NCBI GenBank assembly: GCA_051530055.1
Contig: CM121341.1
Location: 4,256,784 to 4,320,783, forward strand
DNA length: 64,000 bases
Direction: 5' to 3'
Source: Neoechinorhynchus agilis
Taxonomy: Eukaryota; Animalia; Acanthocephala
A program made the position numbers and the translations under genes. Positions within the stretch are counted from its first letter, which is position 1. Every line of letters begins with the position of its first letter. The notes under the pieces are model-generated. The model did no database searches. It was not told the origin of the DNA and was given only the letters and a program-made list of their open reading frames with translations. This document shows positions 42,250 to 64,000 of the stretch, piece after piece.

Positions 42250-43350
42250 ACAAGGAAAATTTATTCAGCGTATCCGCGTCGGAGGATAAACGTCGCAAAC
42301 AAAAATCCTTTAGAAACCCAGCCCAATCTTGAGGCAATGAGTCAATGTGCCTGAAAAATCCTTGAATAAAAAGTGGCTTATGTTCGGGAGGGCGACCTCT
42401 AGAATAAAAAACAAGGCTGGCGATAGCCCAAGTTTTCCATAGAGTTCTTACATTATTAAAATTCAGCCCCAATTTGCATTCGATTTTGCTACTTTTAGAA
42501 GTTTTTTCATTTGAGTAATGTCTGTCCTAGGGGACAAATTGACTGTGATCGTGTGTCCGAGAATACGCAGCTTATTGGGCATAAAAGAGTTGTTCGATAC
42601 GGATTGAGAATTGTTGGATAAAAGTGAATAAAAGAATAGTTTGAAGTCTGCGTATTCGGCTTGAGCGGCGTTTAATGATCAATTTTGTTTTCATTAAATT
42701 AAGAGAAAGGTTCATGTGAGGTAGTATGGTGTTTAGATACTTTATGGATTGTTCGATTAAAAGTTTCAGCCTGGCTGCCCTATGAGATTTCATCACAAAA
42801 CTGGTTTCATCTGCATAACAAATCATAGATGCATTAATTTTGAACAATGTATTGAGAAGAAAAAAAGGAATAAAGTGGCGATCCTCGTGGAACATCGTTA
42901 AGAAGGTAATAAAACGTCTTACCAGTATCATCATTTTAATAAAAAGCTTTCGAGAAAAGCTTAGGTTATGTGGAACACTGAAAAATTCCAACATTTCAAC
43001 GACGAAGCTTAGGGAGATTTTGAAAGTGCACGTAGAGGGTACGCATCGTCGCCAAAGTTCGAATAAATATCAGCCCACGCTGAGTGAACAGACTCAGCCT
43101 TTCAAAAAACCATTGGCAGCATTTGGATATGCAGTTGTGCTCCAAGACGAAAAGATTAAGTTTTTGCGCTAGAGCACGTTCGTAGATGGTGACCAATGGG
43201 GTTTGAAAAAAGACCGGGCGGATGTTTTTTCCCATTTTTAACCAAGAAGATGCGCCGTGAAATATTTATATCCCGACAGGCATACGGGGAACACTACAAC
43301 ATCAATTTTGGTATGGCAGAGAGAAGCATTTGGTTCCTGAAGTGCTGCTG
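42250..43350 (-). mobile_element. Decayed RT of an unclassified LINE-like family
   Basis: GKNIRPVFFQTPLVTIYERALAQKL; ICYADET...LSLNLMKTKLII; C-terminal LVFYSRGRPPEHK. Confidence 0.6.
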
Positions 43351-44895
43351 GATGAGGAAATTTTGGGATTAAGGAACCAAACTTTGGCAATATCATTCTG
43401 AGTCAAATCAGAGCAGTTACGGATTGATCTGCGAAATGTGATCGGCGGTGTGATGCCTTTAGAGCAAGAGGAGGCATGAAAATCAAAGATAGAAGTTAGT
43501 ATCTGGTCCAAAGTGGAGGTTTTTAACCAGGAGGTTAGCTCTGATTTCCAATTAATGAATTTCTTACTCGAAATCGTATTCTACCACTTCGAAAAAAAGG
43601 CGCCGCCGAACGCCGTTTGTTGTCTACAGCGAGCTGGCCAGTATTGACTGGAAAGTATTTTGGATTCAAACCTGCAAGGGTCGCGATGCGCGCTAAAATT
43701 GATAAAAATTGCGCTCTACGTTCAGAAAGGAATATACTTGAAGGCAAACTTCGGGATTCTCCGGGTACCCCGGATCGAAAGGTAGTGATTGATCAAGGTT
43801 TGTTTCGGTTTAATGACTCTAACTCCGGTTTTGATGGAGTTTTGGGATCACTACTTTCTCAATGTCAGGTGGATGATCATAAGCAACCGGTTGTGATGGA
43901 GACAAAAGTTCGGCCCGCAAAAGTAGTTATGTCCTTCGTCCTGTAAGGAAAGAGGATTACATAGTGATAATCAAAAATGAAGACCTTTCATCAAAAGAAA
44001 GTAGGATCAAAACAGTCATCAAAGATTTTGGAAAGTCGTTCCCTATGGATTGTAAAATATTTAAAAAAGTTTCTCCAATCAATTCTCGCAAAAAATTGTG
44101 CTTTTCTCCGAGAAATTCAAAAGAGCTTTCATTAAATATTTAACCGAAAAAGAAATTCCTCACTCGGATCTATCAAGGAATTGCAATGTACTCTTGCTCA
44201 ATCCGCCTCCCGAGGTAGATGAAAAACGTAAAATTTTTATGAAAGATACGCTTGGAATTAATTTTATTAAGTATCTGTTTAAACTTAATAGCCAATTCCC
44301 ATACGCAATTCTCGGGCAAACGGACATTGACAACGCAAGTAGAAGAGATAGTACCTCTACTGGTTTTTGTTTATTTCATATAACTTTTGCCGTTTTCAAG
44401 AACCCGATAGTCGAGTACATTTTGTACCGTGAGAATGAGGTAAACTGTACCCATTGCAGTAGAGAGCATTTGTCCAATCAATGTCCCAATAAATCCAGTA
44501 GGAAAGTTGTGAATTGCGGGATGAATCATAAAGCGTATGATCCTAGATGCGGTGAGGCGAAATATTAAAAAAATCATGAATAGTAGCAAAAATAAAATTT
44601 CAGCTTCTGCTATAGTGACTTGTAAATTAATTTTTAAAGAACAAGCTCAAATACATGAGATGAAGAGGGTTGTCTCTGATTTGGAATGTCTAAAGAGAGA
44701 AAATAGTACGTTGAAAGAGGAATTGAAAATATGTCAGAATGTTAACAAGGAACTGTAAATCATCAAACTCAAAAATATTGAGCTTAAGAGCTTATTAAGA
44801 AATTTGATTACGGCACTGAAAAACACATTTTTAATTTGAAAAATATAAAATAAAATGTGTTTGACAAATTCTTGTTTAATTCTTGTCTTCAAATG

Positions 44896-45280
44896 TTATG
44901 TTTGTTCGGCAGCTTCCTTGATGGCCGCGGCATTGCTGCGTTGGATTGCCGCGCTGATTCGCTGCAACAGGAAGCTGCTGGATCGCATATCGCCGGTGGC
45001 ATGTTTTAGCATCCCTCCCAGTCGTGAGAGGAAATAATCGGCTTCTTTTCCGAGACATCCCAGTGTTTCCACCGCAATCGGGATGAAAATATATTGATGC
45101 CCATCGAGCGAGGAGTACTTCTGCTGCTTCTTTTCCTCGCTGAAGCTGGCGACTGCTCCCGCCTTTGAGGTGGCATCCCGTAAGTGGGATGCTGCGAGCG
45201 TGTTGGAGCAGGTGAAATCCAAAACCAGTATTTTCCCGGAGCACCATGGGAGGAGAGTCGCTCCATCAGGGCGTTTACCT
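44896..45280 (-). mobile_element. 5'-truncated CRE-clade copy with intact RLE coding sequence
   Basis: GKRPDGATLLPW..LDFTC..EEKKQQKY..PIAVETLG..QRISAAIQRSNAA. Confidence 0.88.
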
Positions 45281-45365
45281 CGTCGATAGGAGAGATAAAT
45301 GAAATTAAGATTTTATTGGATATTTCGATCCACTATCTCGGATATTCTTCAGCGATTGTTCGCAA
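45280..45365. mobile_element. Second (partial) copy of the MITE-like element at 25066-25172
   Basis: Reverse-complement similarity (gaaattaag...ggatatttcgatccactatctcggat..cttcagcgattgtt). Confidence 0.7.
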
Positions 45366-47950
45366 GTGTTTACGACGTTAGATAGTAGATCGGTGGAAGG
45401 TAATGCTACATGTTTAAAGGAAGAAGAGATGGTCAACAAGGTTGAGGGTAAGATAGTCTATAAGGCTGAAGATGCGCTTAAAAGAGCTCTCTCGATTGCT
45501 AGAATAGAAGCCGCAAAACAGAATTTAGGGCCTTTAAAAAAAGAATAATTTTAAATACCAATAGATAGTGTTTGTTTTGTAACATGCAATATTGGGAAAT
45601 CCAATAAAATATTTGAAGTTGAGGATTTTTTGAGAAATCAACGGGATTTCTATGCTTGTTTTTTACAAGAGACCGGACCATCACCGTCATTTTATCCTTC
45701 GGAATTTGATTGTTTGCTTACACAACCAGTTCGTTCATCTAGGACGAATTACTCTGGTGGTCTACAATCCTTCCACAGGAAAGATATTTGCCCTAAATTA
45801 TTATCCTTTTCTTAACAATAACGATTATGGAGGACCATACAAAATTGTATGGGTAATTTCTTACCGTAATCAAAAATGTAAAATTAATAAATCAATGGAG
45901 GTAGTCGGGGATCTTAGATATTTGGAAGCCTGATATAATTACCGGAGATTCTAATAATAATTTCTTAAATGCATTTAGAGGTTTATTTAAGGGTAATTAT
46001 ATTATTATTCTACCTAAGGAACCCTCGTTCCACAATTGGTCAAGAGGACTACACTCATTCTTAGATGGAGCAATCATCCAAAACGCCTTAATATCTTATT
46101 CTCCCTTGAAATTCAAATGAGGATGCGTTGGCAATCGGGACATAATGTGTTATTTTTTACTAGCTTTGGCCGAAACTCTCAAAAGACCTATAATATCAAT
46201 AACAAATCAATTACTTTGTTCAATAATGTGCCTAACGAAAAGATTCCACGAATTGTTAAACGTGTTGAAGTCCTTACTTGAGTTTAATCGGTTGTGTTGT
46301 TTGGCTCCTGAATTGACTTTAAAGGAGACCAAGAGGTTAGTGGTAAATCAGCCCGATCGTACGTTTAATTATCTTATTAAATTAGAAATATTCGCCAAAG
46401 AAAATGGGTATGATCACATTGCGAAAAATTTTAAATAGAATTATTTTTCCTCACTTTACTGGAGAGAGTTGAATAGGGAGAAAATTCTTTTAAATCGTTC
46501 AATTTATTCAAAGAGATGGTGGAATATTATTTTAAATAAAAAAATTGGTTGATTGGAAGTCAAAAGCTGAGGCATGGATAAGGAGTTCCTCGTTTCCACA
46601 AGTCGTTAGATCTATTTTAGACTTCCATATTGGCGAGATTCGCCCGACCAATCAATTTCAATGACAACCATGAGGATTCCGATTTTTTCCCTACTTTAAA
46701 CGATTTTATAAGAGCTCTTGGGCGCATAATACTTTCTCACTCCCACTTACTATTTTTAAACTGCTAAACGACCAAAATAAAACTAAATTATGCGAGAGCT
46801 TAGTTTTTAACTTGCGAATTCATCAAATAGCGGAAATTAACAAGGTTAAGCGTATTTTTATTCCTAAAAATAATGTTAAGAAGATAACTCAACCTAAAGA
46901 GCTTAGACCAATTTCGATTCAAGACCCCTTAATTTCCGTGTTGGAAAGGGCCATTGCCAGTAAGATCGTAGAATTTCTTAAACATAATCATTTGATTCCT
47001 AGTTTGATACACGGGTCTATTCGTGGCAGATACGTTCATACGCCAATGGAACAGCTCGTGTTTTTTCTAGGGCTAGACAACATTCTGTGAATGTGCTCTT
47101 ACAAATAGACATTTCGAAGGCGTTTGATGAAATCGATCACTCTTAAATTTACAAGGCCATGAGATTTTATAAAATTCCTAGGAAATTATTTTATCATGTA
47201 ATGATACTTTTAGAAACCAAAGGGGCCTTCTTTGAGCTTGATAAGGATAGAATAATCTTTTAACCGTGTGCATGGAGTTCCTCAAGGCTCGCCACTCTCG
47301 CCTATTTTATTCATGATTTACATGGCTATTTTATTTAAAACTTTAGATTGAAACCTACGTCAGAAATCCTAATAAATGCTGATGATATTTCCTTTTTTAC
47401 CACTAAAAGGTTGTCTGGCGAAAAACGAAAAACTTCTACAGAAGGCTCATCTTTCTGTCAATTTTCAAAATTGTTTTATTATTAAGCAACGAATTCGAAA
47501 AGCACCGAACTTTTATCTAGTTTAAGCGAGATGCTTAAAGTGGTCAAAAACAACAAATTGCCCGGATTACAAGTTTCATTGTTGACATATCCTAGATTTG
47601 AATTAGGAAACGATTAGGTTTGAATTTATGGAGAATATTGCTAAAAGAGTCTTATTTCTAGTACTATCTTTTTTTAAAAGAGGAAGAGCGCCGGAGCAAA
47701 GATTTGCAATGTTTTATAAATTTATGAATTATATCAAAAAAATTAAATTTTTATCCCGTGAATCTATGAATTTTCCTTTCTTTTTATCAAAAGTTTGGTT
47801 TTATAATTGTAGATTTAAGTTTGCTAAAAAAATTTCAATTCATAAGATCAGTTGTGTTTGGTGTATCAGAAAGGTAAGTCTGACAAAACGCTTACTCATC
47901 AAATACTTTTGCAGGACAGTGTAAAATAGAATATGGATAGTTAACTTATA

Positions 47951-50700
47951 TTATTCTGAATTGTCCTTCACCGTCCCCAAGACACTCGCTGCGTTTCCTC
48001 GCTGGATAGCTAAGGATATGTTCTGTACTAGGAACGAGCGAGCCCTCCTGTCATTGGTCGAGTTGATCAGTCGATGCCCCAGTTCGAGAACAAAACTCCT
48101 CGCCGCACGTTTGAAAGCTCCTAAGGTTTCCACTGCGAAGGGGACAAAATGATAAGAATTTGTAAAATCGGCGTATTTTGCAACCTTACGAAGCTCAGCT
48201 GCTGATGCGGCTCCCCCAGCCCCGGAGGATGCATCTCGCAGATTGCTGGCAGCAAGGGAGTCGACGCATGTTGCGTCCCATATTAGACATCTGCCCCTGC
48301 TCCAAGGAAAAACGGTAACTCCATCCGGCCTACGGCCATCGATCCTGCAGATGTTGCTAGGCTCGAGGATATTCGGAGAGTTAGCCGTTTTCAAAGCGCG
48401 GCTCAGCAATGCGTTTATTTCGGTGTGTCTAGCAAAACGGCCACTTGAGCGTTTACAGGCTAATCCGTGCCTGCCCGAGGGGTCGACTTCCGTCCCGCAT
48501 CGGCAGGTGTGAGGGATACAAACCGGGAGCCCGAGCCTTAGGGACACTGCGATTCTGAGAGCCTCGCCGTCTAATCTCGAACCGATATTTGCTGATGGTA
48601 CAGCTTTCAACCAGGCGCCGGACTCTTTGCAGGAAACTGCAGTTAATCGCGTTCTATCCACGTCGGAGAGCGAGTCAAAAAGTGAGGTGTGAACACGCTC
48701 CACTAACGGAATGTCCCACGATTTCTGTTTTTCCGGGAGGTCTGGAATCTTGTCGAGGTTAGACAGGGACATCCAAAGATGAAGAGCGGGCTCCAGGCTG
48801 ATGTCCTCCTCAAAATTATGTTTCAAAATCAATCTGGAAAGGCGCTTGGACCTACTAAGAGACGATAGAAAGGCTGGAAGCGCAATGGCTGAGCTGGCAC
48901 GAATACCGATCCCTCCGTAGCTTGTGGGCAAAGATGCCTGGGTCCAGCCAGTGTCGGGGAGCTTAATATTAAGGATCTTGCATAGACCATCCCTTAAAGA
49001 ACCATCAATCTCTCTCAATTCGGGCTGACATTGAAAGGAAGGGGTTGACCGCAGTTTATGGAGGATGCGTGGAATGAAGATGCAATTTTTTAAAAGGAAG
49101 AGAGCATCGTGAGGGAAAAGTTCAGAGGCCCTTGAACAGATGAGATCAATGGAAGGTCTGATTTTCCTGATATCAGCCTGCATATTCTCCTCGAGAACGC
49201 AGCTTCCCAGCAGTTCTAAGCTGGACTTGGTGATAAGTCGGATATTAGGTGCGGCCTTTTCAAACTCTCTCAAAATTTGTGCGCGTTCCTCGTCCCCACA
49301 ATTCAAAACCAAAATTTCGCACTTGCCTAGGTTCAGTTTGAGGCCAATTTTTTTACATTCTTCTAAAAGAACCGTTATATCTTGTAGGACTTCAGACGGG
49401 GAACCTCCTAGAGTAGCGTCATCCAGATACCAGGCGTTGAATGGTGATCGAAGAGATTGCGCCAGATTGTTTGTCGTCAGAGCAAAACCTAAAGGCCCCA
49501 GAGGGTCCCCTTGCTGCACACCCGATTGAGACCAGATTAGTTCATTATTATATACGAGCGAGGTGTGAGAGCAATATGCTGACTGAAAGTAGGGGAGAAG
49601 CTCTGGAATAGTGTTTCCGACTGCTGAGATTAAGATGCCTCGATCAATAGTGTTGAAGGCATTTGCGAAATCGCACTTCAGGATTAAAAGAACGCAGCGC
49701 GTGGACTATAGCCTCTGCTCCACAAGGAGAGCAACATCCGAGCTGGACGGGCCTAAGGATCTGGCCTGCTTTTTCCGCGACCCTTTTTGACAGAATCTTT
49801 CCGGTGAGACGGCGAAGGGTAGTTCCGATTGCTATGGGACGAATCCCACCGTCCTTCTTATTAAGGGCACACAGGGAAGCCGAAAACATGAAGTGTATTC
49901 CAGTGGCATTCGTGTCGCCTCGAGCGATGAGGTTCACTATAGTGGTCAAAGCCTTGGCGACTTTTTCCGCAGCGCAATGCGCTCCCCCCGAGATTAAGTC
50001 CTTTAGATGTTGGGGTCTGAGCCCGTCTAGACCGTGACTTGAACCGCCGGCGAATGAGGAGAGGGCCCTTTTCATTTCGACCACATCTATCGGTTTGAGA
50101 TCTATCGGTGAAGGGGAATGTGAGCTAGGAGGTGGTGGTACGGCTGAAGGTGGGTGTTTTTCCCGCAAAGCGTTCAAAGTGGTAATTGTGTCCCCCGCAA
50201 AAGTATCCGTTGATGAGAGAAGGCGCACGGCTCCACGGATGTCGCCGTCGGATAACTTGGCCGATACGCGTTCTCCTAAGCGTCTAGATGAAAAACGACG
50301 AGGACCTTCAGATTTCGTCGAAAGGGATGTTGGATCCTCGGCAGATTTGAGCACAGCGAGGAAATTATCAGGGAAGTTGACGACTCTGGACTTGACAATT
50401 GATGTCAAGGATTCCTCTGAGGACTCACCGGCGAATAATACGAGTCGAGGGAAGACGTAGCATCGATGCCGGAAGAAGTAGGTTCGCAAAAAGACATTCT
50501 CCAGTACGAGCGTTAGTGAGTTTGTGTGTGTCCTATGGATTGTTTTGGGTTGAATAATTGCTTGTAAGTTTTGCTTTCGGGGTTGACAATTCAGTTTATT
50601 GTCTTTCGTTATTTGCAAGTTTTTTCAACTGCGATCAATGAACGTCCGTCCAATGGCTTTCTGCTTGTAAGTTACGCAAGCGGTACTCTCACGTTTTGAA
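47951..50700 (-). mobile_element. Near-intact CRE-clade non-LTR retrotransposon (RT + CCHC + restriction-like endonuclease); frameshifting deletion near 49690
   Basis: ALNKKDGGIRPIAIG..RRL, QLG..GAEAIVHA, DFANAFN, GVQQGDPLGP, WYLDD; CRCG..GRHGLAC, RHTEIN, DGRRPDG, WDATC, ELRKVAKY, PFAVETLG. Confidence 0.93.
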
Positions 50701-51639
50701 TTGTTTGCGGCCTTTTTGGTTTCCCCTTTTTTAATTTTTTACTTTTTCAATCCAGCTACAGGTCTCGGCTATTTTTGTTTGCTGCATTTCCGAGATAGAT
50801 TTTATCTTCGGAAACTTTAATGATCCAGAAATGGCTGCGTGCAGTAATAAGGGCAACCGATTCCATTGACATTATTTCCTCACCTTTCAGTCGCCATTCT
50901 TTTTGTCCTATTTGGAACTATGCTTATGGAGGAGGAGATGTGCAATTAGACCACTCGATGTCTCCCAGAGATCCCTTTTCCGAAGAGCTGGCCACGATGG
51001 TATCGTGTGGAGTTTTGATTAAAATCTCCTAAACTATTATTCCCAAACGTTCATCTTTTTTAATACGGCTTTAAAATTATTTTTTACCAGCAACAGGAAT
51101 GCTACACTTTGTGAGATAAACAATTTTTAATTTCTGCCATTAGTGACTTCCAAACTAAAGCAAATTAATTGCTTCGATGAAACCCCGCGTGCTCTTTGCC
51201 TTTACGGGAGGAATTAAATTCTGGTCAGCATTATAGTGGCCTTGTAGAGCTCGTTTCCAACTGAACGAGGATAGAGGTAGGATCAAATCATTCCTTCAAA
51301 AATCTTCTCAACGGTGGCGCGTTGTCCATAAAATTGGCAGCAAGCGGCTGAATCATGGATTAAAACCTGAGGCCTCAACAAAGTGGGGAAAACTCTTTGT
51401 GGCTTTCATTCTGAAGAATGCTTACCCGCATTATATGCAGTTTTCTTACCTGTCAAACCAAGACGCCATGATCTTTAAGCCTCTGATATTGTTCAATGGG
51501 AGAGATCAAGAGATAAAATTTCCGATAAGTGCTCATCAATATGCTCGAAATCCACGAATGTACTCGACAAGGTCAATGTGGCCGACACCGCTAAAGTTAT
51601 GGTCATATTGCTCATATGAACCTCTCGAAGCGTATTTTT

Positions 51640-52600
51640 CTCAGCAAAAACGAAGGAGAAAAGGTTGTAGCCGGTGGAGATGTTCGTCCCATATCCACTC
51701 AGAACTCGCTGGTTCAAACTTCGAACGATCACTAGCTAAAGCGTTTTTTACTTTTTGCCTCAAATAATGACTGCATTGAGCGCAGATGCCATCATTTTTT
51801 ACCCCATAAATCCGTTCAGACGGCTTTGTCTGAAATTATCACTAATTTTAATTCGAATCAGAAGTCAATGAACATTTTAATTTCCTTCGATATCTCTAAG
51901 GCTTTTGATAATATTGATATCGCTTTTATAATATAGATCCTTCGTTATTTTCACTTCCCTAATAAACTAGTTGCACGAGTGCACAACACTATGAAGTCTA
52001 AGCAATTTTTTTATCAAGATGACACATCTCACAAGATTTATCATCAAACAAAAGGAGTTCCGCAAGTGTCCCCACTCTCACTCATCCTCTTCTGATTGGC
52101 TTCCCAGTTTCTGCTTAAGAACGGCAGTCTGCAATGAATTGACCCTATATGCAGACGATTTCAATGCGGTGATCAAGGAAACGAACTACCTGGCAGCTAT
52201 AAAGAAACTCTCAGATTTACTGTCATGTCTTAATTCTATTCTCCTTCAGATGGGTCTGTCACTCAACCCTTTAAGGACGAAATTTATTTCAAAACCTTAG
52301 TCGATTTTTGATAAACAACGTGCTCGCGAATTTTATAAACAATTTCTTAATCTGACCTCGTCGTCAGTTTCTAATAAGATCACAATCTTGGGATACACCC
52401 TACGACCTCCGCAAATTCAAAAAACTCTTACCTGTCGCTAAGCTTAAATCCAGAAGAGCATTTTAACTTGGACTCGGCTCTCATGATACCAGAAACATTT
52501 GGAACTCTTGAGCAATCTCGGGCCTAGTTTTTTACTCTATAGGATGACCCCCGAATAACGATTAAAGTACATTAGCACTTTTCAAGAGATTGAGCAAACT
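51640..52600 (+). mobile_element. Decayed RT, third copy of the unclassified family
   Basis: RPISTQNSLVQTFERSLAK, FLPHKSVQTAL, FDISKAFD, KGVPQ, LYADDF, LSLNPLRTK, LVFYSIG*PP. Confidence 0.7.
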
Positions 52601-52744
52601 CCCTTACTCCTGGAAAGAAGCGCTTAAACGGACAGCGGTGATATAACTTTATTACTTTCGAATTATAATTATTCCTACACATAAATTATGTCGGTTAATT
52701 ATCCAATGTCTTCCTTCGAATGAATCTTATGTATGTGATTTTGG

Positions 52745-52930
52745 ATGAATCACAAGGCTAATGATCGTGGACTTGGATATTTCCTAAAATCAGACAATGC
52801 GACTCCTCCAACTCGAGGTAGTCGCGATTCTGTGGGTTTGGATATTTACTCAGCTGAAGATGCGACAATTGAAGCCGGTGGGCGTCTTTAAATAAAAGCG
52901 GATATCGTTGTCTGCATTCCGGACGGCACC
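52745..52930 (+). pseudogene. DUT: dUTPase N-terminal fragment with internal stop, truncated by palindrome copy 2
   Basis: Frame not in the ORF track: MNHK..LKSDNATPPTRGSRDSVGLDIYSAEDATIEAGGRL*IKADIVVCIPDGT matches dUTPase motif 1 (xPTRGS..AGxDLYSA). Confidence 0.8.
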
Positions 52931-52992
52931 CGAATTCCACTAATCATAAAACGAGCACATTTATTTCTTAAGCTTAAAATTAACCAAAGCGT

Positions 52993-53430
52993 TCAATTGA
53001 GACAAGTACACACCACCATTCCAGTTTCGTCAAACTTTCCAGTCAGTTTCTTGGTTGCAATGAGTTCTTCAATGAGTCTTTTTGTTTCCTCGACGGACGT
53101 CTGCATTGCGTTAGCGACGATTTCAATTGACACTTTGTGATGTATTCCAAAGTATCGTTCCAAGAATACTCTTTTGGCACTGTCCACGAAATCTTTCAGT
53201 TTTGGTGCCAGTGTTTCGTCCGACTTTATGAATTCGACTGATTCAGCCAAGTATTTACCAGCTTCTTTAAAATCGAATTGAACAAATATACAAATGAATA
53301 GGTGATGGATGGGATCGTTATTGGATGCGATCCTTCGTTGCTTGTAGTGATAAAATTCCGCTACTGTGTTGATAAGATCAAAATTCTGACCACATTGAAT
53401 CATTGCATCGATTGCGTATTCGACAGTCAT
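52993..53430 (-). CDS. EIF3E: Truncated eIF3e-like PCI-domain protein, 145 aa
   Basis: Intact ORF MTVEY...VCTCLN. Confidence 0.75.
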   Translation of the reverse strand: MTVEYAIDAMIQCGQNFDLINTVAEFYHYKQRRIASNNDPIHHLFICIFVQFDFKEAGKYLAESVEFIKSDETLAPKLKDFVDSAKRVFLERYFGIHHKVSIEIVANAMQTSVEETKRLIEELIATKKLTGKFDETGMVVCTCLN

Positions 53431-53685
53431 TTTTGGACAGAACTGATAGTGATTGAGAGTAAAAGTTTGAACCGAGAGTTGACTTATATACTGGGTTTCG
53501 TTAGTCTTCGCAGCCAATCAGAGTTCAGGATTTCCCTTGTTGGGTTGCACATTGCCAAAAACCGGATATTCCCACCAATACCCGCAGCGATGCCATGCCT
53601 GCAAATTAAAAAATTCGCTGCGGGTATTGGTGGGAATTTCCGGTTTTTGGCAATGTGCAACCCAACAAGGGAAATCCTGAACTCT

Positions 53686-53726
53686 GATTGGCTGCGAAGA
53701 CTAACGAAACCCAGTATATATATAAG
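53686..53726 (+). promoter_or_regulatory. Candidate core promoter (reverse CCAAT + TATA) of the PCI gene, mirrored on each palindrome arm
   Basis: GATTGG at 53686-53691 and TATATATATAAG at 53715-53726, ~55 nt before the ATG at 53779; AATAAA at 54243-54248 after the stop. Confidence 0.55.
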
Positions 53727-53778
53727 TCGACTTTCGGTTCAAACTTTTACTCTCAATCACTATCAGTTCTGTCCAAAA

Positions 53779-54216
53779 ATGACTGTCGAATACGCAATCG
53801 ATGCAATGATTCAATGTGGTAAGAATTTTAGCCTAATCAACACGATAGCAGACTTTTATCACCATCAGCAACGAAGGATCGCATTTAGAAACGATCCCAT
53901 CCATCATTTTTTCATTTGTATATTTGTTCAATTCGATTTTAAAGAAGCTGGTAAATATTTAGCAGAATCAGTCGAATTTATAAAGTCGGACGAAACGCTG
54001 GAACCAAAACTCAAAGATTTCGTGGACAATGCAAAAAGAGTTTTTTTGGAAAGATACTTTAGAATACATCACAAAGTGTCAATTGAAATCGTCGCCAACG
54101 CAATGCAGACGTCCGTAGAGGAAACAAAAAGCCTCATAGAAGAACTCATTGCAAACAAACAACTGACTGGAAAGTTTGACGAAACTGGAATGGTGGTGTG
54201 TACTGGTCTCAATTGA
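53779..54216 (+). CDS. EIF3E: Truncated eIF3e-like PCI-domain protein, 145 aa
   Basis: Intact ORF MTVEY...VCTGLN (C-terminal part of the 304-aa ORF in the track). Confidence 0.75.
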   Translation: MTVEYAIDAMIQCGKNFSLINTIADFYHHQQRRIAFRNDPIHHFFICIFVQFDFKEAGKYLAESVEFIKSDETLEPKLKDFVDNAKRVFLERYFRIHHKVSIEIVANAMQTSVEETKSLIEELIANKQLTGKFDETGMVVCTGLN

Positions 54217-54489
54217 ACGCTTTGGTTAGTTTTAAGCTTAAGAAATAAATGTGCTCGTTTTATAATTAGTGAAATTTGGGTGTCTTAATAAAAAAAAACA
54301 TGCATTAAAATTAATTCATAGAAATCGAAAAGCAAATTCCAAGTGATTGTGTTAACATAAAAAAATTACCTCTTGTAAAAATAAAAGAAATATGATTTAT
54401 GCAATAGAAAATGAATAAAATATAATGTCAAACTTTTCCATTATTAATCAAATTCAATCTATTAGCTGAAATGAAATCATTCACACCAC

Positions 54490-54720
54490 CGCTCTGGATC
54501 ACTCACTCAGTTGCGTCCTGGTGTAAGGGTCGAATGGACGGATGCAGCGTTCCTTCCCGTTGCACAGCCAGGCTTTTGTTTTGGAAGAGGAATGCTCCTG
54601 CGCTCGGATCGCCGATGATTCGTCCATGTTTCTTGGATAATTGGTGCTGTGCCGCGGTACCAAACGACCCGAGTTTCTCGATGCCAAAAAGAACGAAATA
54701 ATCATTTTCACCCGAGTTCC
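54490..54720 (-). mobile_element. Inverted CRE 3' end (RLE tail) on the right flank of palindrome 2
   Basis: Reverse complement of the 37832-38075 / 60541-60780 sequence. Confidence 0.8.
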
Positions 54721-55069
54721 TTCATCGACGACACCGATGCTGTCCGCTCGCTTCGCTCGGGGACGGACGTTCCTCGCTTCGCTCGGAACCTGGATGCTAG
54801 ACCACCATATGAAGACGGAAACTTGGCCGCCCAAAACGAGCCAAGTGAAGAGAACAACGTCAATGTGATTGTTTCAAATTGATCCTACGACCGAGCTTCT
54901 CAACAGGACTCTGTTAGATTTGTGATTGGATTTTCTCCCTGATGAAAACAGGAGTTCTTAAGATCCATGGACCCCTTAATTCACGATGCTGCGGTTCCGG
55001 TTCACCCAAACAAATCCATTGATGGTGTGCGCCAAAATCCTATAACGACATCACCAATACGAAATGAAA

Positions 55070-55690
55070 TTCCATTTGTAGAGAATATTGTGAGCGCGTC
55101 CTGCCCAAGGATGTTCTGAAAAGAATCCCAAGGGCCGCGCGATATCAGGCCGCAAAGAGATTCATCTCTCGATTGACAGACTGCATCGAGATTAAATCAG
55201 AGTTTTCGCTGTTGCGTATCTTTGTTTTCCCTAGACTGGTGCTTTCCGCTGGTGATGTTTCCAAGGGTTCTCTGACCACAAAAATAAAAGAGCGAATAAG
55301 TTTTGTTGGCGAAAATTTGACTCAATGCCTTCGACAGCATGCGAGCTACGTGGGGAGTGTGTCCAGGAGCGTTACCATCGCTGAAACTCAAATCGGTCGC
55401 TTGCTGGCGCGTTTCTTATAAGCTCGCGGACGTAGATGTCAGAGGAGCAGTTCATCTATGATCATCAATGGACAGTCTCGCCAAAGGTAATGAAGAAACG
55501 TTATGAACTCTTCGTTCCAAACATCTCCGTGACGGTTGTCGGCAGTATTTCGAAGTATTATCGTCCTTCGATATGATCCCTTATGTTTTATCATCGAAAT
55601 CAGAATTGAAGATGGCAGTCTTCTCTTTTGCTAACAGATTAGCTCACGAGCTTCACGGGCTCCGGCCCTAACGCCTAAAGGATATGACTT
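55070..55690 (+). mobile_element. Degenerate CRE-clade N-terminal region
   Basis: FVFPRLVLSAGDVSKGSLTTKIKER parallels YVFPRLVLFAGESSEESLTSIVKSR of the 47951-50700 element; duplicated at 63110-63733. Confidence 0.65.
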
Positions 55691-55799: not shown

Positions 55800-58700
55800 T
55801 AGAGTTTATTACGAACACCTTCATGGCTGGTAAAAAGTCCCGTAACGCAGCCTCCAAGAGGATCACCTGCTCGTGCCAAGGGTGCTCGATAACAACCCTC
55901 ATCGCCCCAACGCACATCCCAGAACCTTGCCTGTTCTTTATCTTTGGGTTCTGCTGCGCCAAGCTGCTGATCAAATTGACACCAGATCGAATGGCATTGG
56001 AGTTGTCAACAGGGCACTTGCGACCGCGATCGAAGCTAACCTCGAAACATCACTTTCTACCATGCATTTGAACATCACAACAGAAGCCATTACACAGATT
56101 TCTCCCGATCTGCCGATCTCTTTCCTCCCGTTTCACCCGTCACAACACATCCCACTCAACTGACTATATCCCCTGAACACAACCAAACAATTGTCAAAGA
56201 TCCTTTACCAGCTCCCAGAAGCTCGTTAATTTCAAATGTAGTTAATGGCAAAGAGCGTAACCTGTTTCCGTACAGGGCCAACCAACTATCTTGTGACAAC
56301 CCAAACGTGCCAACCACACCCGGAAATGATAAATCGTCTCTGGACCCTCGACTTAACTCAATCCCGATTCTCAAACCTCCGGTTTAGACTCATATTACCT
56401 CCCTCACATCCACTCTCCGCCCAGCTCCTTCTTATCCCGCTCGTCGACTTCCGTCTTTTCAAGACTACGCTCGCTTCTCAACCACGTCTACCCTTCAGCC
56501 TCCCTCTCAGAAGATTTTACAGGAGATAACACCTTCCTCGCCGAAATCTTCTCGCGCACCACAAAATCGTCCGCCTAACAAATCGATGGTTGTTCCTAAC
56601 ACATCCGGCCTTCTCCCTGGCTCCGCCCGACACCACGATCTCTTCATCTCCGGTATTCCTTAAGTTCCGGAATGTCCAATTTCTAGCCATTTCAATGCGT
56701 TGAAACACAATTTGCTACATCTCAACGAAATTACCCGTACGCGCTTCCCTTATAACAACCTTCCGGCGCCTGTATCTATTCACCGCATCCCATCAAATAA
56801 TCCAGCTGACTCTCGTCCACGCCTTCTAAAAGTTAGCTTTCACCTTCGTCACACTGCCTCTGCCTACATCTCCAAACGCTTTCTTTTACTAAAATCATCC
56901 CTCCCTTACCGGATATTTCCAGCCCGACAGTCAATAAGTTATCTTCCGTTCGACACACGCCTTCTCCTTCCGTAAATTTTTGGATACCTCCAAAGGAAAC
57001 CGCTGTTCCTTGGCAGAAATTAGACACACAACCGTTTTCCATCCCTTATCAGAAAATCGTCACACCTCAGACATACTGGTCACCACAGAAACCCGGCTCA
57101 GTGGCTCAAACAAAGACACCGCAGCCATAGCTAACGTCACTCACTTTCACTCTGTCAGAGGTCCAACCTAAAAAAATTAGGACGGCCATGAACAATCCAC
57201 TTGCACCCTAGATGAACAGGCAACCACAACATCACCCGACTTGACACCCATCTCGCCCCTCCAACCCATTTCCTTACTGAGCATCCCACCTAAACATCCG
57301 CCCCTTACATATATTTGCGCCTGAACTAAATTTGGAACGCGAGCAAGTTAACACGTATTTCCGCCTCAACTCCAGCCTATAGAGAAACGGCACTATGTCC
57401 GATGCCATCATCCCCGGATTCTCCTGATTTCATCTAACTAGAGATGATTGTTCTGGAGGAGACGTCTCTATTTACTTGAAGTCATCCTTACCATACACCA
57501 TCTCCACCCCCCGACTATTTTATATCAGAACATCTCGAATCGGTCCACCTTCAACTCTCTCTCTTCGTAACGGCAGCCGTGAAATGACCGTCGCCGGTGT
57601 TTATCGTCCAACTGCCTCAACTCCCGCCGCAGCATCTGAACAAATCGATACCTTAATTAATAACAAACTATCGTTAAATTCTCAACACTTCATGATTCTA
57701 GGAGACTTCAACCGTCTCCCTGCTCCACCGTCACTTTCTGATCTCTTACAACTAGTAAACTTCCCCTCGCGTGGTTCATCCAAACTAGATAAAATCTTTA
57801 CCAATATAGCAAAATATTCCGTTCCCATTAAACTCCCACCCGTAGCGACCTCGGATCACTGCACCATCCTCCTTAGACCAATCGTTCCTCGGAAGCGACA
57901 ATCATCCGACCTTTGCCTGGTCTGGGATAAACGTGACCATCACTCTCACTCCTTCTTCAACAAGGTAAGGGATGCCCTACCCGGAATCCGAAGTTCTATA
58001 TACAGCAACGGCCCGTCTAAAGCCATGGCGACATTGTACAATACTTTAGTCCATTGCATGTCTTTCCCTCGGAAAATGATTCGTATGTCGAATCGTGATC
58101 CACCATGGTTTTCACCTTTACTAAAATCACTGCAAGACAAGGTGAAAAAGTCCTTTCGCTCCCGACATCCCGATTACCCAGAACTCCACAAGAGATTCAC
58201 TGAGCGCCTTCTTCACGCTCGCAAAACCTTCCTTTTTTCCAAACTACCGTCATCCCCTAATCGTTCCTGGTGCAGCGAGATCAAAAATGCCATCGGTCTT
58301 CACAGATCTCAGCCTTTCGCCAATCTGCATAAATGTCAGCTCGAAAAAACCCTCAACTCCATGAACGCTACCATGTGACCTCCCAAATCTTACACTGACA
58401 CAAGCGTCGTACGCCCCTGCGATGATCGCAACCATAGGCCCGGTGTTCCTCATTCACGCGTCTCCTCTCTTGAGGTTCTCCTACTCCTCAAAAAACTACC
58501 ACGTACATCACCCCCTAACGCTTTGATTCCCAACTGGGCCATTCGAATCATCATTTCATTGATCTTTGAGCCTCTAGCTCATATCATAAATTCTAGCTTT
58601 GAAACGAGGATTTTTCCAAGTTGCCTGAAGACTGCTCGCATCATTCCTATGCCTAAGGCGGGGAAACCCGTTTCTCCGACTTCCTTTCGCCCTATCTCTC

Positions 58701-59515
58701 TACTCTCGCCGTTTTCTAAAATTTTAAAAAAATGTTTTAAAACTCGCATCCTCCCCATCTTTTTACAAAACATTTCGTCTAACCAATTCGACTTCCGACC
58801 AGGATTCTGTTGTACCGACGCCCTCTTGTGCATTTACGATTCAATTCTGCGCAATCTTGACCAAGAACCGTCTTTCGCTTGTCGCCTCATCCATGTGGAT
58901 CTTGCCAAGACCTTTGACTCTGTAGATCACGATCTTCTCGTTAAGGCCTGTGGGAAGTTTGGCTTCTTACCCTGGCAAATAAACTGGCTCACTTCTTTCC
59001 TCGCAAACCGGTCGCAATATTTTCAATACGGAAATACCTGCTCAACGACGCTTCCCATACATTGCGGTGTGCCACAAGGAACTATACTATCGCCCTTACT
59101 TTTCGACATCTTCCTCAACGACCTTACACCCCTCTCAACGTCCGCTAAATATTTCCTTTATGCGGACGACCTAGCCATCATAACCCATGCTCCTCCATCA
59201 CTCTCGCTCAGCCTCACGTCCGCAGAGATTGAAAATCTTAAAGATTTTTGCACCACCCATCAACTCTCAATTAATTTCTCCAAATCATTTGAACTTATTC
59301 CGTCGCTTCAAAAACCTAGGACTGATATTCCACCGTTCCCTCTCGATATCCAACGTATCACATCGCTTCGGATTCTGGTCCTAATCTTCCAACAGAACCT
59401 CAAATAGGACATCCACATTAATGGCGTCGTAGCAAAAGCCACTGCTAAATTGCATTTAATCAAGCGCTTGCGTTTCCCCGGAGTCAGCCCACGCGATCTG
59501 GCACATTTCTGTTGG
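55800..59515 (+). mobile_element. Decayed CR1/L2-like LINE (ORF1 + APE-RT), 3'-truncated; relative of 33774-37059
   Basis: ORF1 Cys motif CSCQGC..FCCAK; APE VAGVYRP, MILGDFN, LDKIFTN, SDH; RT FRPISLLS, VDLAKTFD, GVPQGTILSPLLF, YADD. Confidence 0.85.
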
Positions 59516-59521: not shown

Positions 59522-59745
59522 GTGTGCATATTTCAGTGATTGAGTGTTTAGGGGTTAATTTCGAGAAGATCCTTTCGCAACAGAACCCACACATGAAGTC
59601 TGCAGTAGGATTCTGCGGGATTGTGCTGGAGAGGAGGGTGATTATTGTACAGTCCGGGCTTGAACACGAAATACGTTTTGTGTTTAGTTTGTTGGATTTT
59701 CTGACCGTTTTAGAAACTGACGAACGCGGATGGAGGATAAACTGG
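59522..59745 (-). mobile_element. Duplicated 5' end of the 33774-37059 LINE, including its junction with the CRE host
   Basis: Near-identical to 36862-37085. Confidence 0.85.
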
Positions 59746-60780
59746 GAAAATTAGACGAGACGTTGAAAGCCTCTTTCGAGAAAATTTTAAATACTCAGCT
59801 GTCGGACGGGGCCTGGCGTCAAGCGTCCTTGCCTGTCGTCCGGCGGTTTAGTTATCCGAAATGCAGCCGTTATTTCTCTGCCAGCCTCTTATTTGGAATC
59901 GTATGAAGCAGGCTGCAAAGTATTTAAATCCGTTCTTGGTGAGAATTACACTTTGGATGAAGATTTCGTGGAGGCGCTTAATATTTGGTGTGGAGATTCA
60001 GGCAGCGAGCAAGTACCCGTCAGTGGTTGCAAACAATCAGTTTAGGACTTTACCCCTGGTAACGAGAATTCATAACTCTTTAATTTCAGATTCTCGTAAC
60101 CTAATGAACCAAACTCCACTGGCGGCAGTCTATACAAGAGAATCGGGGGTTTGGCTCAACCCTCTCCCAATCGCTTCTGTGGGTATCCTTCTCTCAGACA
60201 AGACAGTAAGGATTGCAATGTCCCTGAGACTTGAGGTACAGATGGGCACATCTCATCGCTGAAGTAGCGGAGCGACCGTGGAACCATCGGGACGAAATGG
60301 TCTCGTCTGTCGGGAATCAGGCGGAAAATACTCACGACGTGCCGAAATGAACGCAATTCCGAGTCGTGCCCTGAATACTGTGAATGCGCCAAACATCCGA
60401 GAGCCCAGCAATCTTTGCCGACTCGATGGCTGTATACCGGACGGTGTCACAGTATTCCCGTGGCGAGGGGAGGCAAATGCCTAGACTATTAAACCAGGAA
60501 GAGCAGCAACCGCCGCTGAGGACGCAAAAAGACTAAATACGGGAACTTGGGTGAAAATAATTATTTCGTTCTTTTTGGCATCGAGAAACTCGGGTCGTTT
60601 GGTACCGCGGCACAGTACCAATTGTCCAAGAAACATGGACGAATCATTGGCGATCCGAGCGCAGGAGCATTCTTCTTCAAAAACAAAAGCCTGGTTGTGC
60701 AACGGGAAGGAACGCCGCATTCGCACTTTCGACCGTTACACCAGGACGCAACTGAGTGAGTGATCCAGAGCGGTGGTGTG
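59746..60780 (+). mobile_element. Duplicated CRE 3' part
   Basis: Near-identical to 37086-38080, with an extra segment near 60095-60145 that is missing from the first copy. Confidence 0.85.
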
Positions 60781-61045
60781 AATGATTTCATTTCAGCTAA
60801 TAGATTGAATTTGATTAGTAATGGAAAAGTTTGACATTATATTTTATTCATTTTCTATTGCATAAATCAATATTTCTTTTATTTTTACAAGAGGTAATTT
60901 TTTTATGTTAACACAATCACTTGGAATTTGCTTTTCGATTTCTATGAATTAATTTTAATGCATGTTTTTTTTATTAAGACGCCCAAATTTCACTAATTAT
61001 AAAACGTGCACATTTATTTCTTAAGCTTAAAATTAACCAAAGCGT

Positions 61046-61483
61046 TCAATTGAGACCAGTACACACCACCATTCTAGTTTCGTCAAACTTTCCAGTCAGT
61101 TGTTTGTTTGCAATGAGTTTTTCTATGAGACTTCTTGTTTCCTCTACGGACGTCTGCATTGCGTTAGCGACGATTTCAATTGACACTTTGTGATGTATTC
61201 TAAAGTATCTTTCCAAAAATACTCTTTTTGCATTGTCCACGAAATCTTTGAGTTTTGGTTCCAGCGTTTCGTCCGACTTTATGAATTCGACAGATTCTGC
61301 TAAATATTTACCAGCTTCTTTAAAATCGAATTGAACGAATATACAAATAAAGAAATGATGGATGGGATCGTTATTGGATGCGATCCTTCGTTGCTTGTGG
61401 TGATAAAAGTCTGCTATCGTGTTGATAAGATCAAAATTCTGCCCACATTGAATCATTGCATCGATTGCGTATTCGACAGTCAT
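61046..61483 (-). CDS. EIF3E: Truncated eIF3e-like PCI-domain protein, 145 aa
   Basis: Intact ORF MTVEY...VCTGLN. Confidence 0.75.
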   Translation of the reverse strand: MTVEYAIDAMIQCGQNFDLINTIADFYHHKQRRIASNNDPIHHFFICIFVQFDFKEAGKYLAESVEFIKSDETLEPKLKDFVDNAKRVFLERYFRIHHKVSIEIVANAMQTSVEETRSLIEKLIANKQLTGKFDETRMVVCTGLN

Positions 61484-61828
61484 TTTTGGACAGAACTGAT
61501 AGTGATTGAGAGTAAAAGTTTGAACCGAGAGTCGACTTATATATATACTGGGTTTCGTTAGTCTTCGCAGCCAATCAGAGTTCAGGATTTCCCTTGTTGG
61601 GTTGCACATTGCCAAAAACCGGAAATTCCCACCAATACCCGCAGCGAATTTTTTAATTTGCAGGCATGGCATCGCTGCGGGTATTGGTGGGAATATCCGG
61701 TTTTTGGCGATAATGCATTTCATTGAAGTCACTTAGCGCTTTCTGATTGGCTAGGGACAACGAAACCCAGTATATAAGTCAACTCTCAGTTCAAACTTTT
61801 ACTCTCAATGCTATCAGTTCTGTCAAAA

Positions 61829-62258
61829 ATGACTGTCAGATAAATCGATCTGTGATTCAATGTGGTATCAGGAACAGCTAATCCAACATTCTTGGACTTT
61901 TATCACCATCAGCAACGAAGGATCATTTAGAAACGATCCCATCCATCATTTCTTTATTTGTATATTCGTTCAATTCGATTTTAAAGAAGCTGGTAAATAT
62001 TTAGCAGAATCTGTCGAATTCATAAAGTCGGACGAAACACTGGCACCAAAACTGAAAGATTTCGTGGACAGTGCAAAAAGAGTTTTTTTGGAAAGATACT
62101 TTAGAATACATCACAAAGTGTCAATTGAAATCGTCGCCAACACAATGCAGACGTCCGTAGAGGAAACAAAAAGCCTCATAGAAGAACTCATTGCAAACAA
62201 ACAACTGACTGGAAAGTTTGACGAAACTGGAATGGTGGTGTGTACTGGTCTCAATTGA
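61829..62258 (+). CDS. EIF3E: Truncated eIF3e-like PCI protein; 5' part garbled
   Basis: 3' part intact (RNDPIHHFF...VCTGLN); many indels at 61720-61920. Confidence 0.55.
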
Positions 62259-63109
62259 ACGCTTTGGTTAATTTTAAGCTTAAGAAATAAATGTGCACGT
62301 TTTATAATTAGTGAAATTTGGGCGTCTTAATAAAAAAAACATGCATTAAAATTAATTCATAGAAATCGAAAAGCAAATTCCAAGTGATTGTGTTAACATA
62401 AAAAAATTACCTCTTGTAAAAATAAAAGAAATATTGATTTATGCAATAGAAAATGAATAAAATATAATGTCAAACTTTTCCATTATTAATCAAATTCAAT
62501 CTATTAGCTGAAATGAAATCATTCACACCACCGCTCTGGATCACTCACTCAGTTGCGTCCTGGTGTAAGGGTCGAATGGACGGATGCAGCGTTCCTTCCC
62601 GTTGCACAGCCAGGCTTTTGTTTTGGAAGAGGAATGCTCCTGCGCTCGGATCGCCGATGATTCGTCCATGTTTCTTGGATAATTGGTGCTGTGCCGCGGT
62701 ACCAAACGACCCGAGTTTCTCGATGCCAAAAAGAACGAAATAATCATTTTCACCCGAGTTCCTTCATCGACGACACCGATGCTGTCCGCTCGCTTCGCTC
62801 GGGGACGGACGTTCCTCGCTTCGCTCGGAACCTGGATGCTAGACCACCATATGAAGACGGAAACTTGGCCGCCCAAAACGAGCCAAGTGAAGAGAACAAC
62901 GTCAATGTGATTGTTTCAAATTGATCCTACGACCGAGCTTCTCAACAGGACTCTGTTAGATTTGTGATTGGATTTTCTCCCTGATGAAAACAGGAGTTCT
63001 TAAGATCCATGGACCCCTTAATTCACGATGCTGCGGTTCCGGTTCACCCAAACAAATCCATTGATGGTGTGCGCCAAAATCCTATAACGACATCACCAAT
63101 ACGAAATGA

Positions 63110-64000
63110 AATTCCATTTGTAGAGAATATTGTGAGCGCGTCCTGCCCAAGGATGTTCTGAAAAGAATCCCAAGGGCCGCGCGATATCAGGCCGCAAAGA
63201 GATTCATCTCTCGATTGACAGACTGCATCGAGATTAAATCAGAGTTTTCGCTGTTGCGTATCTTTGTTTTCCCTAGACTGGTGCTTTCCGCTGGTGATGT
63301 TTCCAAGGGTTCTCTGACCACAAAAATAAAAGAGCGAATAAGTTTTGTTGGCGAAAATTTGACTCAATGCCTTCGACAGCATGCGAGCTACGTGGGGAGT
63401 GTGTCCAGGAGCGTTACCATCGCTGAAACTCAAATCGGTCGCTTGCTGGCGCGTTTCTTATAAGCTCGCGGACGTAGATGTCAGAGGAGCAGTTCATCTA
63501 TGATCATCAATGGACAGTCTCGCCAAAGATAGTGAAGAAACGTTATGAACTCTTCGTTCCAAACATCTGCGTCACGGTTGTCGGCAGTATTTCGAAGTAT
63601 TATCGTCCTTCGATATGATCCCTTATGTTTTATCATCGAAATCAGAATTGAAGATGGCAGTCTTCTCTTTTGCTAACAGATTAGCTCACGAGCTTCACGG
63701 GCTCCGGCCCTAACGCCTAAAGGATATGACTTTCTTTTCAGTAGGTGACGCTGCTCAGTCCCTTGAGGATGCATTGGCACGACTAGTCGACCAATTTGCA
63801 GGGGGGGGAGTTTATTCCGAAAGCAATTGAGTTATTTTTCGGCGCATCTTTGTGTGCCCTCGCAAAAAAGGAAGGTGGGATTCGTCCCATTGCGATTGGA
63901 GCAACTTTGCGCCGCTTAACACCAAAAATTTTAAATAAAAGGATGGCAGAAAAAGTAGGGATGCTGCTTCGCCCTAATGATATTTCAAAAATACATTCAA
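63110..64000 (+). mobile_element. Degenerate CRE-clade N-terminal/RT region running off the window end
   Basis: FVFPRLVL...; ASLCALAKKEGGIRPIAIGATLRRL at ~63845-63920. Confidence 0.75.

Follow-up and report, generated by a model that had tools for sequence, protein, structure and literature searches.

Palindromic cassettes with divergent genes for a PCI-only, eIF3e-derived mini-protein in the acanthocephalan Neoechinorhynchus agilis

A 64,000-nt stretch of Neoechinorhynchus agilis chromosome CM121341.1 (approximately 4,256,784-4,320,783 of assembly GCA_051530055.1; hereafter the window) contains three palindromic cassettes whose arms carry outward-directed genes for a 145-residue protein derived from the PCI end of the translation initiation factor subunit eIF3e. 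An amplified, lineage-specific and selected family of mini-eIF3e genes, and not a transposon, is probably the best overall explanation of these cassettes, with putative roles for gene dosage and protein docking. The structural and evolutionary account of the family is very probably correct.

Palindromic cassettes and their paired genes

The three inverted-repeat cassettes are found where an earlier note on this DNA had placed them, and the central spacer is 24 nt in all three, as described there. A full arm measures 1106 nt outward from the centre. The spacer sequence itself is not palindromic and is common, in either orientation, to all six known cassettes. The features of the window cassettes are as follows.

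37829-38934, minus strand: cassette 1 left arm (c1L), full; inverted repeat
38337-38774, minus strand: c1L gene, intact open reading frame (ORF)
38935-38958, unstranded: cassette 1 spacer
38959-39711, plus strand: cassette 1 right arm (c1R), cut at arm position 779; carries a pseudogene
52927-53590, minus strand: cassette 2 left arm (c2L), cut at arm position 666
52993-53430, minus strand: c2L gene, intact ORF
53591-53614, unstranded: cassette 2 spacer, in the orientation opposite to that of cassettes 1 and 3
53615-54721, plus strand: cassette 2 right arm (c2R), full
53779-54216, plus strand: c2R gene, intact ORF
59525-60541, unstranded: cassette 3 left flank, following a long interspersed nuclear element (LINE); equals the cassette 1 left flank (36864-37828) at 97-98%
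60542-61647, minus strand: cassette 3 left arm (c3L), full 1106 nt; inverted repeat with 61672-62762
61011-61021, minus strand: c3L AATAAA signal, ~30 nt beyond the stop codon
61046-61483, minus strand: c3L gene, intact intronless ORF of 145 residues plus stop; identified by ORF, Pfam PCI, eIF3e match, AlphaFold2 (AF2) and Foldseek
61536-61578, minus strand: c3L motifs, Y-box CTGATTGGCT at 61569-61578 and TATATAAG at 61536-61543, ~50 nt 5' of the ATG
61648-61671, unstranded: cassette 3 spacer
61672-62762, plus strand: cassette 3 right arm (c3R), strongly diverged at arm positions 38-260
61829-62258, plus strand: c3R gene, with ATG at 61829; broken by a stop at codon 5 (61841-61843) and by several indels
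62763-63732, unstranded: cassette 3 right flank; equals the cassette 2 right flank (54721-55690) at ~95% across a 2.8-kb match

Both full 1.1-kb arms are present only in cassette 3, whose span of 60542-62762 agrees with that reported earlier. Cassettes 1 and 2 are lopsided, with one arm cut each; these two were correctly located, but their full arms extend to 37829 and 54721, beyond the ends originally given. The arms of cassette 3 are 90.8% identical to each other over 2246 nt (blastn), and their outer 831 nt are 97% complementary. Because c3R is strongly diverged at positions 38-260, these long near-perfect arms do not touch the spacer. The corresponding window segment, 61709-61930, is far more diverged than its counterpart in any other arm, those counterparts differing by ~1%. 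It retains the Y-box and TATA elements, its coding start is wrecked, and it may be a patch from a more distant family member.

Arm differences recur across copies, as the earlier note had remarked (e.g. TTTAGA versus CCAATA at arm positions 271-275). The inverted-repeat structure is far beyond chance, and the cassette 2 centre can form a near-perfect DNA hairpin with a folding energy of -139 kcal/mol, compared with -28 +/- 3 kcal/mol for shuffled sequences (z = -33.7). A search of window 33-64 kb found no tandem repeats, which shows that the cassettes do not form a regular tandem array.

The ORFs are 438 nt long, contiguous and directed outward, as described, and the original count of six genes falls to four intact ORFs (c1L, c2L, c2R and c3L). 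A 21-nt deletion removes the ATG of the c1R copy and a 1-nt frameshift near arm position 421 completes its conversion to a pseudogene. The broken c3R gene contains an alternative 132-residue ORF at 61860-62258, back in frame from NDPIHHFF.

Every arm contains CTGATTGGCT, TATATAAG and AATAAA at fixed distances, in keeping with the GATTGG/TATA motifs upstream and AATAAA downstream noted previously; CTGATTGGCT is a Y-box, i.e. an inverted CCAAT box. Read outward from the centre, the order is a GGGAAT[AT]TCC decamer, the Y-box, TATATAAG after another ~30 nt, a leader of ~50 nt that ends with CAAAAATG, the 438-nt ORF, and AATAAA ~30 nt past the stop. The 164 nt from spacer to ATG, which include the stretch with the c3L motifs, differ by only 1.2% among arms, far below the divergence at third codon positions; either constraint on a control region or a hot spot of conversion in the centre would fit this. 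Each arm would have its own CCAAT/TATA promoter, both firing outward from a common 330-bp centre. The decamer is kappaB-like and lies 18-27 nt from the spacer in every arm (38908-38917, 53564-53573, 61621-61630 and the mirror sites). A second ATTGG occurs at positions 10-19 of every arm and, like the decamer, falls inside the most conserved part of the arm.

A truncated eIF3e protein and its family

The earlier note had proposed a PCI-only, eIF3e-derived product and suggested that the 145-residue protein be compared with PCI subunits by profile and structure searches. Pfam, phmmer, AF2 and Foldseek all bear this out. First, the Pfam PCI domain (PF01399; gathering cut-off 22 bits) matches residues 66-140 of all four intact window copies at 29.9-33.4 bits (33 bits for the c3L product), and no other Pfam domain in the protein exceeds its gathering cut-off. 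Second, a phmmer search of PDB retrieves eIF3e with E 1e-13 over residues 282-388 of 445, the next family being eIF3c at E ~0.1. Third, an AF2 model made from an alignment of 12 mini-proteins and 39 eIF3e segments has a mean predicted local distance difference test score (pLDDT) of 94.4 and a predicted template modelling score (pTM) of 0.89, and consists of five helices (3-15, 17-35, 40-51, 54-69 and 75-96) followed by a strand-helix-helix-strand-strand winged helix. Fourth, the top eight Foldseek matches in PDB are all chains of eIF3e, with E values from 9e-8 to 4e-5 and query TM-scores of 0.65-0.78, and PCI subunits of the COP9 signalosome (CSN) and the proteasome lid (Rpn) rank after them.

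The mini-protein corresponds to eIF3e residues ~252-396, comprising the last five helices of the PCI domain and the winged helix. Absent are the eIF3_N domain (PF09440), which canonical eIF3e proteins contain, the ~250 N-terminal residues that form the helical arm, and the C-terminal tail of ~50 residues; the mini-protein ORF stops 4-5 residues past the last strand. An eIF3e orthologue was taken to have PF09440 and the helical arm in a total of ~400-480 residues. Lacking the N-terminal domain and the tail, and being multi-copy, the mini-protein is derived from eIF3e yet is not its orthologue. Its identity to any eIF3e is 21-34%, where metazoan eIF3e proteins are ~60% alike.

Among 1.84 billion protein cluster representatives (HMMER/phmmer), N. 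agilis mini-proteins are followed by full-length eIF3e from across eukaryotes. These are 30-38% identical over the matched stretches, and all named full-length matches are eIF3e. No isolated PCI-end eIF3e protein was found outside N. agilis in this set. Seven short matches in other species were inspected as candidate mini-proteins; all run into the eIF3e C-terminal tail and were rejected as fragments or exon calls.

The family extends well beyond the window, with at least 13 palindrome-type arms, 11 of 13 with an intact 145-codon ORF, and at least 17 mini-protein genes. Three further cassettes, c4, c5 and c6, were reached through annotated relatives. The first of these (locus L001, ~4.21 Mb) lies within an inverted 98% duplicate of at least 13.6 kb of window 34294-47912, and c5 is on an unplaced 20-kb contig, L003. 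Cassette c6 (L004:8771-10886, ~4.327 Mb, ~6.7 kb past the window end) adjoins a proteasome AAA-ATPase gene; it is a clean palindrome whose 1046-nt arms match at 97% and carry two intact genes. There is also a solo arm, c7, ~750 bp beyond the window end.

An older cluster is located at ~0.85 Mb of CM121341.1 (L005:7896-11710). It contains three tandem genes of 144/145 residues in a 1271-bp unit, 97-98% alike, and a 121-residue gene upstream in divergent orientation. Identity to the palindromic copies is 41% for the tandem trio and 37% for the 121-residue gene, and the cluster has the same Y-box core and CAAAAATG start context as the palindromic copies. In a maximum-likelihood tree the mini-proteins form one clade (100/100) on a long branch apart from all eIF3e, and all of them carry common derived replacements at residues invariant in eIF3e. 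One ancient truncation event is thus the simplest reading of this single clade.

Two of the distant copies show additional features. The duplicate pair consisting of window 34294-47912 and L001:854-15026, ~70 kb apart on the same chromosome, inverted and ~98% identical, holds cassette 1/4 together with a gene for a TGS1-like cap guanine-N2 methyltransferase (minus strand, window 40588-41193), and may belong to a far larger inverted structure or result from duplication in the assembly. Contig L003 matches window 50454-54393 over its positions 1-3935, with a cassette 2 left flank that is 99.9% identical, 63 differences inside the cassette and a flipped spacer, and then runs into different genes (RBP-receptor-like and VKGC-like). 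Either allelic variation within the worm pool or a very recent duplication could account for it.

Selection, sequence exchange and the origin of the copies

Comparison of 11 intact palindromic copies gives a mean synonymous divergence (dS) of 0.178 and a mean nonsynonymous divergence (dN) of 0.033, a ratio of 0.18, with diversity at codon positions 1, 2 and 3 of 4.6, 2.4 and 10.1%. A minimum-change count places 34 synonymous changes on 88 sites and 34 nonsynonymous changes on 347 sites (p = 5e-8). The low ratio and the synonymous excess indicate purifying selection at the protein level, and the intact palindromic copies are under such selection.

These values bear directly on the view that the copies are neutral debris, i.e. 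dead retrocopies or partial eIF3e duplicates that are drifting, with the palindromes as a by-product of an unstable, repeat-rich region. Two of the six window copies are indeed broken, satellites and LINEs fill the region, and copies of the old tandem cluster differ at 2 synonymous and 16 nonsynonymous sites. However, drift does not account for the synonymous excess, for an exact 145-codon frame kept in 11 of 13 arms at dS ~0.18, for subfamilies only 37-41% identical that retain length and predicted fold, or for a promoter region that is the most conserved part of the arm, and this view is very unlikely.

Drosophila hairpin RNA genes arose by inverted duplication of their targets, and the N. 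agilis palindromes could likewise be hairpin RNA loci, in which a read-through transcript would fold into a 1-kb hairpin whose small RNAs silence the mini-PCI family or eIF3e. The near-perfect inverted arms, the 24-nt loop and the very stable fold would suit such a locus, and nearby LINE promoters could supply the read-through. It is nonetheless a highly improbable role: each arm has its own outward CCAAT/TATA unit and AATAAA, the ORFs are under a protein-level constraint that a pure hairpin precursor would not need, and the small-RNA repertoire of acanthocephalans is strongly reduced (PMC12256650). Rfam (at gathering thresholds) and a tRNA scan identify no RNA genes in the whole window.

The copies also exchange sequence. 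The four-gamete test is failed by 726 of 1176 informative site pairs. The spacer has opposite orientations in c1 and c4, and likewise in c2 and c5, despite flanks that are 98-99.9% alike, and recombination between inverted arms yields exactly such flips. Cassettes c5 and c2 differ by 2 bases in 2.4 kb of flank versus 63 bases inside the cassette, and the left gene of c5 is closest to c3L (0.7%), not c2L (6.8%). Copies thus trade sequence by gene conversion, and the centre flips via arm-to-arm recombination.

The assembly itself could in principle have generated such structures. It totals 46.2 Mb in three large scaffolds and was built with a MaSuRCA/Flye hybrid approach from nanopore reads of ~50 pooled worms plus Illumina reads, with haplotypes purged and Hi-C used for contig scaffolding (PMC12690905). 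Because leftover haplotypes are possible in a pool of this kind, copy counts may be affected. Fold-back nanopore reads, chimeric junctions or uncollapsed haplotypes might then account for the palindromes or for most copies, and the pooled hybrid assembly, the 99.9% identity of the L003 and c2 flanks, the recurrence of break points 666 and 779 among arms and the existence of a solo arm are compatible with this. However, within a cassette the coding stretches of the two arms diverge by 3.7-14% (3.7-9.1% for pairs with two intact ORFs) and by indels, with differences concentrated at third codon positions. One folded molecule cannot yield such differences, since a fold-back artefact would give identical arms after polishing, and the earlier argument against single fold-back read artefacts therefore stands. 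Moreover, the six cassettes have different arm combinations, and short-read k-mer completeness is 96%. Haplotype leftovers may inflate the copy count by one or two, with L003 the obvious candidate, but they do not account for the structure. An assembly artefact is a very unlikely explanation of the palindromes or of most of their copies.

The earlier note was correct that a head-to-head unit has been amplified, but its description of the unit as mobile is contradicted by the flanks. The left flank of cassette 3 (~1 kb) is common to cassette 1 and its right flank (~1 kb) to cassette 2, and c4 and c5 have kilobase-long stretches of flank in common with c1 and c2. The two flanks of cassette 3 differ from each other, with no target-site duplication at its ends, and no transposase is found in the arms, where the mini-PCI gene is the sole conserved ORF and a distal-arm ORF has no Pfam match. 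All known cassette copies but one, on an unplaced contig with a flank 99.9% identical to that of c2, lie within 130 kb. The common flanks and the absence of a target-site duplication and of a transposase indicate segmental duplication rather than transposition; the units are segmental duplicates of one ancestral locus in a LINE- and satellite-rich region, and no transposon. A mobile or selfish foldback-type transposon, with long terminal inverted repeats around a captured gene, would explain long inverted arms in several copies in such a region, and also the unique flanks of c6 beside housekeeping genes, but with neither a transposase nor any ORF besides the mini-PCI gene in the unit, no target-site duplication, and flanks shared between c3 and c1, c3 and c2, c4 and c1, and c5 and c2 among copies so tightly clustered, it is most improbable.

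A gene with its putative promoter occurs twice, in inverted orientation on either side of the 24-nt centre, so that two genes point outward. This pair has been copied segmentally and rearranged into whole, lopsided and solo-arm copies. The gene is intronless and starts mid-protein, so its founder may have been a 5'-truncated retrocopy of eIF3e. An A8 run occurs ~40 nt past AATAAA, within AT-rich DNA. A search of phage records with one arm found nothing, as is normal for animal DNA.

Repeats are abundant around the cassettes. Non-LTR retrotransposon pieces with endonuclease and reverse-transcriptase ORFs occupy 57476-59407 (plus strand), 47951-50618 (minus) and 34269-34973 (minus); they lie between or beside the cassettes, and one abuts the left flank common to cassettes 1 and 3. 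The element at 57476-59407, with apurinic endonuclease and reverse-transcriptase ORFs, precedes the left flank of cassette 3. Pfam scans of the flanking ORFs identify LINE reverse transcriptase and endonuclease pieces, none linked to the cassette. A 330-bp satellite at 20349-24623 has 13 units, most 99-100% identical, and a 153-bp satellite at 25761-30000 has at least 24 units that match the reference unit at 62-99% and is strongly strand-biased (AT skew ~-0.28, GC skew ~+0.15). At 11667-14287, a 450-bp in-frame tandem repeat gives ORFs of 440 and 433 residues built of 150-residue units that are 94-100% alike; these ORFs have no Pfam domain, and the repeat may be a repetitive protein gene. An uninterrupted ORF at 31449-32645 encodes a PPP5-type Ser/Thr phosphatase (Metallophos and the PPP5 tetratricopeptide repeat region), and fragments of the sequence immediately 3' of this ORF (32761-33028) reappear, at 84-92% identity, in the cassette 3 right flank (63106-63906).

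Proposed function and comparison with known systems

In eIF3, CSN and the proteasome lid, an arc is formed by PCI subunits whose winged helices join edge-to-edge. The mini-protein may be a free-standing PCI docking module that binds edge-on, through its winged helix, to a partner in a PCI complex; such a role is tentative. In plants, the eIF3e PCI domain is required for the eIF3e-eIF3l contact (PMC13043079). The eIF3 subunits K, L, G and M are reported absent from the N. agilis lineage (PMC12256650), and full-length eIF3e is scored "Complete" by BUSCO in N. agilis and fragmented in P. laevis (PMC12256650 Supplementary File 1). N. agilis, whose eIF3 is reduced, thus has the mini-protein genes in addition to a normal eIF3e. 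The BUSCO table also scores PCID2, a further PCI-domain protein, as missing from both acanthocephalans (PMC12256650 Supplementary File 1).

The likeliest docking partner would be this reduced eIF3. Where eIF3 l, k and m are missing, the arc would be shortened, and an additional winged helix of eIF3e type might cap or modulate it. With its altered surface, the mini-protein would not be a simple eIF3e mimic, and amplification of the palindromic pairs may serve dosage. A stronger proposal, which is unlikely, is that the mini-proteins are working parts of a remodelled eIF3, either filling or capping vacated positions of the PCI arc beside eIF3e or eIF3c or tuning which eIF3 forms assemble, with palindromic amplification supplying the dose.

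Several observations weigh against the explanation of the cassettes as a selected, docking-competent mini-eIF3e family. Binding of an eIF3 partner is a guess, as half of the conserved eIF3e columns are changed: the palindromic subfamily keeps 19 of the 38 columns that are at least 80% conserved in eIF3e, mostly core positions, and none of the three mini subfamilies retains F73 or E117, both invariant in eIF3e, or W119, which is 92% conserved there. A third invariant residue, R86, is K in the palindromic copies and unchanged in the other two subfamilies. The surface of the mini-protein thus probably differs from that of eIF3e; the replaced residues argue against simple eIF3e mimicry, and its partner may be something other than eIF3. 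The resident N. agilis eIF3e is not among the 120 best canonical matches to a tardigrade eIF3e query, nor among the 13 best full-length phmmer matches named. Retrocopy marks are lacking at the cassettes, where neither a clear poly(A) remnant nor a target-site duplication was found. The differences between two copies of the old tandem cluster, which cluster in residues 12-46, are too few to interpret and do not indicate constraint there. Allelic variants may be present among the copies (e.g. that on L003), and chimeras among the junctions.

Two further points concern structure and annotation. The distal 234 nt of the c6 arms are palindromic but bear no relation to the distal portion of any other full arm, which simple segmental duplication does not account for; either a lone arm gave rise to the palindrome anew around the same centre, or one arm received an insertion that was then copied to the other. 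Two annotated gene models are also odd, one spliced and 166 residues long and the other a 208-residue model that crosses the cassette centre. The models come from an RNA-seq-guided BRAKER annotation, and the GenBank name is hypothetical protein. The main text of the N. agilis genome paper mentions neither eIF3, PCI, a palindrome nor the locus tags, and one supplement likewise does not mention eIF3 or PCI.

The earlier note knew of no described element of this design, but divergent duplicated gene pairs are common and gene-bearing palindromes are known. The palindromes of mammalian sex chromosomes (human Y P1-P8, and X) likewise have inverted arms, each with a protein-coding gene copy, and also exhibit arm-arm and copy-copy conversion, spacer inversions, copy-number change and partial copies (PMC3723533, PMC8327919, PMC3403216). 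The locus is an ampliconic palindrome, with multi-copy inverted gene arms, gene conversion and spacer inversion. It differs in scale and context: the N. agilis arms are 0.7-1.1 kb with a 24-nt spacer and 3-9% divergence, whereas mammalian arms extend from kb to Mb, have kb-scale spacers and are >99.9% identical. The N. agilis genes start at the centre, from a common 330-bp control region, and the host genome, that of an acanthocephalan, measures 46 Mb. Ampliconic palindromes are typically, though not by definition, sex-linked and expressed with a germline or testis bias.

Among proteins, eIF3e/Int6 is the best match by sequence and by predicted fold; it is a single-copy eIF3 subunit, whereas the mini-protein family is multi-copy and truncated at both ends. 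Subunits eIF3k, CSN8 and Rpn12 consist of a short helical part and a winged helix, dock edge-on and end the PCI arc. The mini-protein resembles them in size and logic only, which the CSN and Rpn fold matches support; they are ancient, single-copy orthologues of ~200-270 residues with their own helical part, whereas the mini-protein has 145 residues and is eIF3e-derived, lineage-specific and amplified. Of these subunits, eIF3k is reported missing in the N. agilis lineage (PMC12256650). The Drosophila Stellate/Su(Ste) genes are CK2-beta-like paralogues in tandem, sex-linked arrays, engaged in a conflict based on Piwi-interacting RNAs (piRNAs). Stellate is likewise a shortened or diverged paralogue of a conserved-complex subunit, multiplied in repeat-rich DNA; its tandem arrangement, sex linkage and piRNA conflict are not among the features seen at the N. 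agilis cassettes. The Int6 fragment truncated by mouse mammary tumour virus (Int6sh) is reported to be a natural eIF3e fragment with its own activity; it retains the N-terminus and loses the PCI domain, and mini-eIF3e is the opposite truncation, with the PCI end only (PMC2206715).

If the genes prove unexpressed, the cassettes would be a mere curiosity of an unstable, repeat-rich region. As compact gene-bearing palindromes, with 1-kb arms and a 24-nt spacer, they display conversion and centre flipping outside vertebrate sex chromosomes, in a unit small enough to fit whole within single long reads. Isolated winged-helix modules in a lineage that has shed eIF3 subunits are a natural test of how PCI complexes tolerate or use such modules. 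Should the remodelled eIF3 prove true, it would represent a new route by which a conserved translation complex is rebuilt from fragments of its own subunit.

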